From Octopus sinensis (lineage: Eukaryota): a DNA stretch of 64,000 nt. A program made the translations under genes and the position numbers. The notes under the pieces were generated by a model that saw only the letters and a list, made by a program, of their open reading frames with translations, had not been told where the DNA came from and did no database searches. This document shows positions 8,397-55,117 of the stretch, piece by piece; the stretch's first letter is position 1, and each line of letters begins with the position of its first letter. The stretch is taken from assembly GCF_006345805.1 (NCBI RefSeq), contig NC_043004.1, forward strand, positions 83,204,001 through 83,268,000. Reading direction: 5' to 3'.

Positions 8397-9356
8397 TGAT
8401 CGGTTTAAACGAAGTCCACACCAAAACATTCCTATGCAAAAGAGTATGTTAATGATTAACATCAGTAACATATAAAGTTGTACATATGGGGCAGATTTAA
8501 AGTAATTATTTATCATTCCATACGTGGCAATGCAGCCGCTTGTTATATTAGCAAAGACGATAAATCCGGATGTTAACTTCAGTGATTCGTTGACAAATCT
8601 CAGTATTGCGCTTAGAGTATCGTGTCTATTACATATTTCTTCAATCCCTCTATGTGTCTTGAACATAACAGGCTTATCTGATTGTTGTTCTTTTAAGCAC
8701 TTCTGGGCCTCATTCGCCACTTTCTTAAACTCATAAATAAGTGTAAGACTGATTATAAGATCAAAATAGAGATCAAATAACACGGTCACCAAAGAGAAGC
8801 CATTAAAGATGAGTTGTATTGTTAAAACTGGAATGTAATATGTATTATTTGTTGGTACAGGAAATGTTAAAAACATCAGAAAATCGCTACTGCAGAGCGG
8901 CAAGATAAGATCCATACACATATAGAAAATGACAAGCCCGGATATATATACAAATAAAGCTGTATATGAAAATATTAAATTACAGTTATAATATTTTATA
9001 CTTTCCTCTTCAATTTCAAGATCGGCGAATTTTTCAAATAGTTGCTTGTCGTAAGAATCCCCGAAGAGTTTCACCAAACAGAAGAGAGTTAAGAAACTCC
9101 TGTAGAGAATTATGTAACAATACACAAATATTCCACTTGTGTTAGCATTTTGCATTTGTATTAAAGTCACAATATGCCGAATCGGGTTTACAATCAAATA
9201 TATAATGTATAATAGGTAAATTGCAGAGAAACAAATTACACTCAAATCGAGTGTTTTCAAGATGGATTTATTCATAATATGTTTCCGAATATTACTAATT
9301 TTTCGATATAATTCCAACATTTTAAAGAATTGTGTTTGTTTTGCGTCCATACTCAT
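8397..9356 (-). CDS. GRL exon 1: long first coding exon of a gustatory-receptor-like (7TMIC) protein, TM1-TM6, 320 codons (318 from the second Met)
   Basis: Six hydrophobic segments. The long loop between TM4 and TM5 (YEFKKVANEA...EICNRHDTLSAILRFVNESL) matches the GR/GRL H..L...+N pattern. The frame reaches CGLRLNRS then TCA|GTAAGT (8396-8391). The ORF-track tail 8301-8396 is probably intron read-through. Confidence 0.8.
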
Positions 9357-9880
9357 TCTAATTCCGTCTTATAAAGAGAGTTTTGCTTTCAAATAGATAA
9401 ACACGACAGTAGATTCCACACGATATATAAAGCAATTTTTCCGCTCTTTCTTTCTTGTCTAGATTTGACTGTGTTGTAAAATTTAATGTAACGGTAAAAT
9501 TGAAACAATAACCGATGGCAAAATAAAGTTATTATGAAAGGCCTGTAGAAATTCGACAGCATTAGTGTATATGATGTTAGCTTTAAGCAGATGCTAAAGG
9601 TCTGAATGCCTATGAACTAAAAAGTTTGTTGTCATGAAAGTATAAAAGATGTAAGTCCACTTTCTATGAAACATGGTCAATATTCCTTTATGTCTAAACA
9701 AAAAACTAATCCGTATTCTTATTTACAGTCGATATATTATTAAATAGCATGTATATTTATATACATAAATATACATATATATAAATGCACAAACACACAT
9801 ATACACATATGTATCCATATGTGTGTGCATACATGGGTGTGTGTATATATATATCTGCATACATACACACAAACACACAC

Positions 9881-10097
9881 AGAAACGTTAGCGCGCTGGG
9901 CGAAATGCTTAGCAGTATTTCGTCTGCCGCTACGTTCTGAGTTCAAATTCCGCCGAGGTCGACTTTGCCTTTCATCCTTTCGGGGTCGATAAATAAAGTA
10001 CCAGTTACGCACTGGGGCCGATGTAATCGACTTAATCCGTTTGTCTGTCCTTGTTTGTCCCCTCTGTGTTTAGCCCCTTGTGGGCAATAAAGAAATA
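9881..10097 (+). mobile_element. tRNA-derived SINE (5'-truncated), octopus-type
   Basis: B-box-like GAGTTCAAATTCC, a core cgactttgcctttcatcctttcggggtcgataaa and an A-rich end. A related copy lies at 40752-40980. Confidence 0.75.
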
Positions 10098-10214
10098 TAT
10101 ATGTATGTATATGTCTATGTATATATATATAAATATATATATATATACATATGTATGTATATATATATATATATATTTATATATATATATAAACATATGC
10201 ATATACATACATAT

Positions 10215-52400: not shown

Positions 52401-53378
52401 CATACCACCTAATAAACACGAAGAAGAAGAAGAAGAAGATGATGAAGAAACAACAAAAGCTATAAAACAAATGAAATCCAAACTAAAAATAGAACAGCAA
52501 CGAACCATGATAAAACGATGGCAAGAAAAGCCCCTTCATGGTAAATACTGCACTAAACTAAACGCAAAAGAAATAGACAAAGAAAGATCCCAGCAATGGT
52601 TGAGAAGCTCAGGACTCAAAGCAGAAACAGAGGGATTTTTAATTGCAGCACAAGACCAAAGCCTCCCCACCAGAAATTACCAAAAACATGTAATGAAAAG
52701 AAATATTACAAGTAACTGCAGAATATGTGGAGATGGACAAGAAACAATAAATCATATTATCTCTAGCTGCCCAGTCCTGGCTAAGAAGGAATATATTCAC
52801 AGACATGACAGAGTTGGAACCTACATACATTGGAAGCTATGCCAACATTATGGAATAACAACAGAAAAAAGATGGTATAGGCACACACCAGAAAAGGTTA
52901 CAGAAAACGGGAAAGCAACTCTGGGATATGCCGATACACACAGATAGAGAAATTAAGGCCAACAGACCAGATATAGTTGTCAGAGACCATGAAAAAAAAA
53001 ATGCTTTCTAATTGATGTATCAATACCGGCAGATGACAACGTGTCTCTAAAAGAAATGGAGAAACTCTCAAAATACAAAAACCTGGAAATAGAGGTAACT
53101 AGAATGTGGAATCTGAAAACAGAAGCAATTCGTATCATAGTAGGTGCATTAGGCATGATAAAAAAATATTCAGACAAATACATAACAAAAACACCAGGAC
53201 TTACAAACACATATATCATACAGAAAATTGCACTACTAGGCACTGCACACATCCTACGCAGAGCACTTTCCATACAATAACCATCAGAGCATCACAACAA
53301 ATCACAGCACATACCGAAGGCACACAGAGCTGCGCTCGGTAGTGAAGTGAAAGCACGCTATAAAAATAAAACTACTGA
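49138..53378 (+). mobile_element. Full-length family A R4/Dong-like LINE (several frameshifts, one premature stop)
   Basis: Collinear ORFs 49641-50114, 50174-51136, 51349-51660, 51662-52030, 52180-52947 and 53041-53280, then 3'UTR and (AAT)n tail. Confidence 0.95.
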
Positions 53379-54163
53379 ATAATAATAATAATAATAATAA
53401 TAATAATAATAATAATAATAAACTATGACTACCCATGTATTTTAATTTAACTTTAAAAAAAACAAAAAATAATGAACGAACTAGTGAGTCTAGTTTAATG
53501 TCCTACCAATGTATACTATGAGTTTCTTTGCCCTAGGAGTCGGAAGACACTCGGCAAGAAATGGAAGCAAATTTGAAAGAAGGAAAAAAAGATAATAATA
53601 ATAATAATAATAATAATAATAATAATAATAATAATAATAATGGTAATTGATAACGCACAAAATTGAATTTTTGACAGAATTTGCAATATTTTCTGTTATT
53701 TCTATTAGATTTGATGTCTTCATTTTTATCTTTTTTAAATGCTACAATTAATATACTGGATTTATAAAGAAAATTGGACTGATCTCCATTACTGTACGCT
53801 GTAAGTTATCATCATCACACAAGTTAAGCAAACGTAGCCGGTTCAGAGATTGTGAAAGAGAGAGTAAGAAAACAGGGAGAGTGAAAATGGAAGACAACGA
53901 GAAGGACAAGTGTTGAACTTGTGTACTCTGTTTTAGTGGTACTCTGTTGAATTTGTTTGGATGAGAGGCAAGGCTAATTTCCCCATGACATGGACACAAA
54001 GCGAAGAGAAGTGGAAGAAACGACAAAAGATCATTCCGTGTAGCTGACACGTTAAAAAGTCGGTCGTTTAAACACCTTTTATGGTGTTATTTCTAACATA
54101 GCAATTCAAATATAAGGCAGACTGGATAGCTTAGAGTTATGTAATAAAATTTATGCTACATAC

Positions 54164-55117
54164 CGATCTGTTTAATTGAATTCCGCACCAAAGCACTGCA
54201 ATCCACGCAGACAGACATCCTGAAATCACCACAGCTACATAAATATTTATATACATGTTATTTTTGAAGGTATCAGTTATTATTCCGTAAGTAGCAATGC
54301 AGCAGCTAACCATACTGCCGAACACGATAAATCCTGAAATATAATGCAGGGAGTCATTTACTAATCTCACTATTGAACTCAGAGCATCATGGGTGTTACA
54401 TATATCTGTAATCTCTCCATGGTGCGTAAAATCCGAGTTCGCTGATTGCTTTTCAGTTACATAAATCTGTGCTTCATTCGCCACTTTGTTAAAGTGACAC
54501 ATAAGAGTAACTGCGATTAGAAGATATATATACACATCACTTAATACGGATAAAGCTGATATAGAATTAAATACAATCTGCATTGCTAAAAATGGGATGA
54601 TGTAAGAGTAAGTATTTGGAACAGGATATTCGTAAAAGATCAACAAATCATAACTCAACAGCGGTATAATGAAATCCAGAGTTATACTCCCAATAATAAT
54701 TAGGCATATCAATATATACACTGATTTATATATTATAGGTTTGTTATACCAGATTCCATCTTCATCATCAATTTTAAGTCCAGCAAACTTTTCAATTAGC
54801 TCCTCGTCTCTAGATTTTCTGAACAGTTTTATGAATGGAGAGAGAGAAAGGAATAAACGGAAAAATATTATGTAAATATATAAAAACATTTTATCATTTT
54901 CGAGCGTTTTCAGTCGTATTAAGGAAACAATGTGACGAATAGGGTTTAGAATCAAATACATGTAAAAAAGTGCAAAGAAAACTTGTAGACAAACTGATTT
55001 AAGTTTGTTTGATTTCATCAACGATATATCGATTATTGATTTGCCACAGCTATTAATTTTTCGATAAACTTCGAGAGTTTTCAACAACTGCGTTTCATTT
55101 GTTTTCACGGTTTCCAT
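54164..55117 (-). CDS. GRL exon 5: divergent paralog, first coding exon, TM1-TM6, 318 codons
   Basis: Shares NPIRHIV, IIPLLSYDLLIFYEYPVPN, FNKVANEAQ, EITDICNTHDALSSIVRLVNDSL and CCIATYGII. Donor TCG|GTATGT at 54163-54158, after WCGIQLNRS. Confidence 0.8.

Follow-up and report, generated by a model that had tools for sequence, protein, structure and literature searches.

In insects, several gustatory receptor (GR) loci consist of tandem long first exons that are alternatively spliced to common short exons, as has been described for Gr39a, Gr28b and Gr23a of Drosophila and for Gr60a-m of the cockroach (PMC2204066, PMC6175461). GR-like proteins (GRLs) are also known outside the arthropods, in Mollusca among others (Robertson 2015; Eyun 2017; Saina 2015, as cited in PMC7746228). 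Members of the superfamily have seven transmembrane (TM) segments, an intracellular N-terminus, long intracellular loops and the TM7 motif TYhhhhhQF, where h is a hydrophobic residue (PMC9998090, PMC7746228); their intracellular loops are longer than the extracellular ones, and their total length is ~350-500 amino acids (PMC7746228). Here we describe a locus of Octopus sinensis (RefSeq) that resembles the insect ones. Within the analysed stretch of 64,000 nucleotides (the window, G000:C8:83204001-83268000; window coordinates are used unless G000:C8 is given), five large open reading frames (ORFs) are best read as alternative long first exons of one GRL gene, LOC118764607, encoding seven-TM ion channels of Pfam family 7tm_7. 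We put the probability of this reading at roughly four in five. The exon anatomy itself is directly visible in the DNA, and two of the five exons, V1 and V2, are joined to a common tail in RefSeq models.

The five ORFs, named V1 to V5 in the direction in which they are read (Table 1), lie in long minus-strand frames at 54137-55150, 38602-39750, 35734-36804, 16822-17892 and 8301-9368, which measure 337-382 codons from stop to stop in surroundings of ~30% GC. From the first ATG to the donor all five translate without a stop, giving 318-331 residues. Each has its own ATG, and in all five a GT donor in phase 0, of one of three types, sits at one common aligned codon. Hydropathy gives six hydrophobic segments per ORF. 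At the protein level, three copies are 92-94% identical to each other, and the other two are 43-44% identical to those. The alignment of the five contains the conserved blocks F.K.A..AQ, I...CN.H..LS.I...VN.SL, G.I......S.CIATYG.I and W.G, with invariant residues at F210, K212, A214, A217, Q218, I238, C242, N243, H245, L248, S249, V255, N256, S258, L259, G264, I266, S273, C275-G280, W312 and G314. To this extent a previous, sequence-only reading of the stretch was accurate: the ORF scan, translation, hydropathy and alignment return the five intact, stop-free minus-strand exons with about six hydrophobic helices each that it had reported, together with the blocks it had quoted and the division into three near-identical and two divergent paralogous exons. 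Its attribution of the DNA to a cephalopod was likewise correct, the RefSeq proteins XP_036361417, XP_036361418 and XP_036361420 of O. sinensis being direct matches. Where it went wrong was in calling the exons a tandem array of genes, since each ORF encodes TM1-6 only, the window holds no private TM7 exons, and RefSeq joins two of the ORFs to one tail.

This tail is encoded by three constant exons, A, B and C, that lie on the minus strand 26-32 kb past the left edge of the window. The boundaries V/A, A/B and B/C are all GT-AG and all in phase 0, and the last intron directly precedes exon C. Together, the three exons supply the last part of the TM6 cytoplasmic extension, followed by TM7a and by TM7b with the TYhhhhhQ motif. 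The A+B+C set is found once in the unit, 4.3 kb 3' of the last variable exon. Three further large exons, two of them intact and one with a stop codon, separate the window from exon A; all large exons of the unit share the same strand, and every intact copy has an ATG and the GT donor at the common codon. As such, the transcription unit comprises eight variable and three constant exons and spans ~87 kb; the introns that lead from a variable exon to exon A measure 4.3 to 80 kb. The donors of V1 and V5 lie 80.2 kb and 34.4 kb upstream of the exon A acceptor, respectively. The RefSeq isoforms of LOC118764607, all named "uncharacterized protein", follow this layout: X1 (XP_036361417, 389 amino acids) equals V1+A+B+C letter for letter, X2 (XP_036361418, 375 amino acids) has V1 as its first exon and uses an internal acceptor 14 codons into exon A, and X4 (XP_036361420, 230 amino acids) consists of V2 from an internal methionine followed by the A/B/C tail. 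The two usable acceptors of exon A, at G000:C8:83177998 and 83177956, read ...ctactag/GTTCAC and ...CAATTTCAG/GACATA (the slash marks the intron-exon boundary), and the 14 residues VHSITRSIHYMQFQ, located at the cytoplasmic end of TM6, are what distinguishes X1 from X2.

The likeness to the insect Gr loci is close in layout: long first exons, which each have a start codon of their own and encode six TM segments, stand in tandem before three common short final exons for TM7 and the C-terminus, the intron phases are 0-0-0, and decayed exons are scattered among intact ones. The differences lie elsewhere. The octopus locus belongs to a cephalopod and has much longer introns (4-80 kb), full of long interspersed nuclear elements (LINEs). 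It has eight variable exons, with possibly ~15 in a neighbouring unit, and in sequence it resembles insect GRs only marginally. Furthermore, the alternative acceptor of exon A, which adds or removes 14 residues, sets it apart from the insect loci.

Do the spliced products belong to the GR/GRL superfamily? Against the gathering threshold of 26.6 bits for Pfam 7tm_7 (PF08395), the X4 product (V2 plus constant tail) scores 30.3 bits, and that of the neighbouring gene LOC118764606, aligned to positions 33-366 of the 370 in the model, reaches 31.7 bits. The five ORFs without the constant tail have no Pfam match, 7tm_7 included, and the signal was seen only after the tail had been attached or a shorter isoform was scanned. 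The spliced products are 375-402 amino acids long and show seven hydropathy peaks. The N-terminal side of the membrane, made up of the N-terminus together with loops 2, 4 and 6, carries 24 lysines and arginines, and the opposite side carries 6; this positive-inside pattern indicates an intracellular N-terminus, the opposite of G-protein-coupled receptors (GPCRs). Segment lengths are 41, 36, 54 and 55 amino acids on the N-terminal side, versus 17, 37, 11 and 5 on the other. Exon C carries TYILVVIQ, in which T, Y and Q enclose five hydrophobic residues and which thus agrees with three of the four fixed positions of TYhhhhhQF. Like GR/GRL genes, the locus has three phase-0 introns at its 3' end, a match in number and phase.

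The predicted fold points in the same direction. An AlphaFold2 model of X2 reached a predicted local distance difference test score (pLDDT) of 70.8 and a predicted template modelling (pTM) score of 0.68, which rose to 77.5 and 0.74 with a deeper alignment. In a Foldseek search of this model against the PDB, the top 17 matches were all chains of insect odorant receptors (ORs), Orco or GRs, at a probability of 1.00 and template modelling scores of 0.47-0.59, with unrelated folds at 0.26 or less; the first, shallower model gave the same picture. No GPCR appeared among the Foldseek matches listed, and neither the ORFs nor the spliced products had a GPCR match in Pfam. The region between TM4 and TM5, which the sequence-only reading took for a long loop, is modelled instead as cytoplasmic extensions of two helices of ~50 residues, as in the anchor domain of Orco. 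Cryo-EM structures of Orco, ORs and GRs (6C70, 8V02, 8V3C, 8JME, 8JM9, 8UVU) match the octopus model best, and they alone do so with confidence; like them, the model has very long TM4, TM5 and TM6 helices that reach into the cytoplasm. It differs in that sequence identity is 10-16% and the octopus TM7 is of low confidence, and that the tetramer and gating are known for those structures. Taken together, the 7tm_7 match, TM7 motif, three phase-0 3' introns, positive-inside pattern and exclusive OR, Orco and GR structural matches support placement of the products in the GR/GRL superfamily of seven-TM ion channels and not among GPCRs. The family had already been named from sequence, and three of the checks proposed with it, namely the Pfam profile (for the X4 product), the structural comparison of the model and the predicted orientation of the N-terminus, came out in its favour.

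Several observations weigh against the interpretation of the five ORFs as first exons of a single GRL gene. The Octopus bimaculoides ortholog of V1 scores 25.1 bits against 7tm_7, just under the cut-off, and the full-length V1 and V3 products fall under the Pfam reporting threshold. The final F of TYhhhhhQF is a T here, and TM7 has a pLDDT of only 36-56 in the AlphaFold2 model. Among PDB chains, a sequence-only family profile retrieved neither ORs nor GRs; its best match, acetylcholinesterase at E 0.29, is noise. The joins are known as RefSeq models only, in which two of the five window exons (V1 and V2) occur, and a search of a protein collection with the near-identical V3 exon gave no match of V3, V4 or V5 to any retrieved protein. 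Upstream of the divergent variable exons, only simple-sequence 9-mers are common, with no promoter-like shared motif. Finally, pairwise ratios of non-synonymous to synonymous substitution rates (dN/dS) of V3, V4 and V5 range over 0.41-0.97, so that one or more of these exons could be unused.

This last point leads to the first alternative, namely that V3, V4 and V5 are recent copies that are not used and have not yet decayed, leaving V1 and V2 as the functional first exons. The four recent duplicates of the locus are separated by a dS of 0.04-0.10, and V3 versus V5 accounts for the highest dN/dS. With a divergence of just 3-6%, the chance that a frame survives without selection is not negligible, and many copies elsewhere in the cluster have decayed; the lack of matching proteins for these three exons fits as well. 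The substitution data alone could therefore leave room for relaxed constraint among the recent duplicates. The indels tell otherwise: while nucleotide divergence of exons and flanks is similar, the recent-duplicate exons have no indels in 954 nt, against 10-214 gapped positions per 600 nt in the homologous flanks. All copies retain their ATG and GTAAGT donor, and the remaining pairs have a dN/dS of 0.41-0.70. We therefore regard disuse of all three exons as unlikely. For the divergent exons, a comparison with another octopod is possible through short Logan contigs from its sequencing runs, which hold orthologs of V1 (SRR11869394, 62% amino acid identity) and V2 (SRR11869391, 66%) with intact frames and a conserved GTAAGT donor. 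The cross-species dN/dS is 0.47 for V1 and 0.59 for V2, at a dS of 0.32-0.49. As judged from these substitution patterns, the variable exons appear to be constrained yet fast-evolving. The earlier claim that the family is under selection is thus weakly supported, in that the indel-free frames amid gapped flanks speak for it, while the dN/dS values, both of the duplicates and across species, lend it little.

A second alternative takes V1 to V5 for five independent, complete tandem GRL genes, each with private TM7 exons. Tandem arrays are indeed the commonest organisation of chemoreceptor families, and each ORF comes with its own ATG and donor. However, a tblastn search with the last 71 residues of annotated relatives (the O. 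sinensis C-terminus) found no private TM7 exon in the window, and phmmer searches with each constant exon found no A, B or C there (best E 0.47 or worse), where the same queries in the downstream locus gave E 1.5e-13, 6e-18 and 2.4e-9 as a positive control. A scan of the window for TY.....Q returned matches only inside the large exons, in another frame. RefSeq, moreover, attaches V1 and V2 to a common tail, and the large exons of the genome, at least 60 in number, have only six constant sets between them. Taken together, this makes independent genes very improbable.

The remaining possibility, that the ORFs are stand-alone six-TM proteins made by intron read-through, or GPCRs or another unrelated membrane family, can be dismissed as highly improbable: although the open frames run 8-45 codons beyond the donor, most gene callers on other assemblies predict exactly such read-through products and the large exons alone lack a Pfam match, the read-through tails are unconserved between V1, V2 and V3 and across species where the donor is conserved, the spliced tail differs little from one constant set to another, and both the fold search, with OR, Orco and GR chains alone at high probability, and the positive-inside pattern contradict it.

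Table 1. Exons and exon remnants of LOC118764607 in and beyond the window
Feature	Location	Strand	Details
V1, variable first exon	54164..55117	-	318 codons, own ATG, TM1-6, donor TCG/gtatgt
V2, variable first exon	38713..39705	-	331 codons, TM1-6, donor GCG/gtaagt
V3, variable first exon	35830..36783	-	318 codons, donor TCA/gtaagt; among four recent duplicates
V4, variable first exon	16918..17871	-	318 codons, donor TCA/gtaagt; recent duplicate
V5, variable first exon	8397..9356	-	320 codons, ATG at 9356 and second ATG at 9350, donor TCA/gtaagt
Decayed large-exon fragment, inverted	11061..11529	+	profile positions 2-137, three frames, stops
Tail of second decayed large-exon fragment	1..43 (G000:C8:83203570-83204043)	+	crosses left window edge
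Constant exon A	G000:C8:83177930-83177998	-	peptide VHSITRSIHYMQFQDIKPEVVAK
Constant exon B	G000:C8:83173959-83174048	-	peptide ILVFLNRLTTESHGIDVGGCFVITPSSTLT
Constant exon C	G000:C8:83171909-83171965	-	peptide MIGSFITYILVVIQTKSL, then stop

The window is one part of a much larger cluster, which we mapped from genome search coordinates and from the direct sequence of 200 kb (G000:C8:82500001-82700000). All large-exon matches in the genome fall on one contig, at 82.50-83.26 Mb (~0.76 Mb). They amount to at least 60 copies, with ~27 full-length and stop-free, ~7 more that are divergent, and the others fragments or copies with stops. Each of the six complete A+B+C sets lies 3' of a run of large exons on the same strand. 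On the plus strand of the 200 kb segment there are ~9 intact variable exons and over 15 decayed ones, and the segment contains no constant exon. A TY-motif match within it, at 82,652,148-82,652,297 (+), was rejected as a chance occurrence, as it has no preceding hydrophobic segment and no A or B match nearby. The first plus-strand constant set is found at 82,785,443, so that a single constant set may serve a plus-strand unit with ~15 intact variable exons spread across ~280 kb. In isoform X1 of the neighbouring gene LOC118764608, a large exon at 82,748,771 is followed by the exact A and B peptides of the set at 82,785,443, a join that passes over three intact variable exons; as a rule, then, variable exons of this cluster have their constant exons in common.

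A divergent sub-family of intact large exons, with 22-30% identity to those of the window, occupies G000:C8:82899688-83048452 (-). Near it, only isolated or decayed B-like constant exons were seen, at 83067865 and, with stops, at 82889829. LOC118764606 is a divergent cluster member with a related constant tail.

Like non-arthropod GRLs, the octopus products have seven TM segments with the N-terminus inside, intracellular loops that exceed the extracellular ones, the TM7 motif and membership of Pfam 7tm_7, and their genes have the conserved introns at the 3' end. They differ in how narrow their lineage is: among 1.84 billion representative proteins only 27 matches were found, the named ones all from Octopus and the others from unnamed ENA and Logan assembly contigs. 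Most of these database relatives end in "...LN.SVS...", which is donor read-through; automated gene calls on other octopod assemblies mostly read the large exon into the intron, and TM7 is missed.

The sequence-only reading also held that the exons sit among transposon remains, and this is borne out: the DNA between the large exons is retrotransposon sequence of LINE type, in which RVT_1, zf-RVT and Exo_endo_phos_2 domains are recognised. Copies of non-long-terminal-repeat (non-LTR) retrotransposons, some of them 92-99% identical, occupy the introns between the variable exons at 675-3038, 19948-22723, 24134-27764, 29915-31687 and 49602-52947 (+) and at 41241-44908 (-). At least two families are represented. 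Their long ORFs are in part intact; one ORF has 787 amino acids and carries RVT_1 and zf-RVT, and another carries Exo_endo_phos_2 and RVT_1. A tandem segmental duplication of ~8.5 kb relates 5228-9737 to 13683-18266 (spacing 8455-8529, 93-97% identity). Its unit carries V5 and V4 as well as retrotransposon pieces, and because these pieces sit within the duplicated segment, the duplication of the V5/V4 exon is later than the retrotransposon insertions. The two inverted, decayed large-exon fragments (11061-11529 and 1-43), both broken up between frames and containing stops, indicate a past inversion or duplication and the death of exons inside the locus. At the other end of the window, ~57200-61200, TA/CA-rich simple sequence creates spurious long ORFs of the YIYIYI and HTHTHT type on both strands. 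An ORF of 231 amino acids at 58279-58974 (+), which arises from simple sequence, has a cysteine-rich part and a part that resembles the GIY-YIG nuclease motif of Penelope-like elements; Pfam gave no match for it at E < 1e-3.

So how could one tail serve so many first exons? By analogy with insect Gr39a, Gr28b and Gr60a-m, transcription would start upstream of one variable exon, the donor of this exon would be spliced to the first available acceptor, that of exon A, and any variable exons downstream of it would leave as intron. If the structures of Orco, ORs and GRs are taken as a guide, the products would be tetrameric ligand-gated cation channels, in which the variable exon supplies the ligand pocket (TM2-4 and TM6), and the constant exons supply TM7a/TM7b, the pore helix and the core of the anchor domain. 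Isoforms would then differ in tuning and have a common conduction and assembly module. A chemosensory role for the products of LOC118764607 is a plausible guess, against which it must be considered that non-insect GRLs are non-chemosensory in some animals (PMC7746228).

Other families invite comparison as well. The clustered protocadherins and UGT1A of vertebrates similarly place many variable first exons, over tens to hundreds of kb, before a small common constant region. They are unrelated protein families, and promoter choice, which has been demonstrated there, is conjecture in the octopus, where no conserved upstream element was found. It is conceivable, if doubtful, that the cluster acts as a protocadherin-like receptor-choice system, in which promoter choice would yield one isoform per sensory cell and a second, hitherto undescribed ionotropic chemoreceptor repertoire beside the chemotactile receptors (CRs) of octopus. 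In such a system, six constant regions would serve the ~34 intact variable exons of the ~0.76 Mb, and all isoforms would have one pore and assembly module. The layout of one long first exon and three short ones might then have been inherited from the protostome ancestor or be convergent with that of insects, a suggestion that we likewise hold to be unlikely as it stands. The CRs themselves are derived from nicotinic receptors (PMC11526382, PMC12635824). Like the octopus GRLs, they are candidate ionotropic sensory receptors whose family is specific to its lineage and has expanded there; in contrast, they are pentameric Cys-loop channels of another fold and origin, with demonstrated ligands and sucker expression, whereas the GRLs are known from sequence.

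As for novelty, GRLs in Mollusca and the splicing architecture in insects are already known, and the proteins are present in RefSeq as uncharacterised isoforms. The architecture of Gr39a, Gr28b and Gr60a-m in a cephalopod appears to be new: the available literature (Robertson 2015 being outside its scope) contained no description of cephalopod GRLs or of a variable/constant layout outside the arthropods, in line with the sequence-only reading, which knew of no described cephalopod GRL cluster.

For annotation, the lesson is that read-through gene calls cause the size of this family and its seventh helix to be systematically missed in octopod assemblies. The locus would also bear on how conserved phase-0 3' introns predispose the superfamily to diversification at the level of exons. 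Contact chemosensation of octopus is currently explained by the nicotinic-derived CRs, and a repertoire of GRLs built from alternative first exons would represent a second candidate ionotropic family in cephalopods. Variable sensor exons combined with a constant pore block would then exist outside the arthropods.

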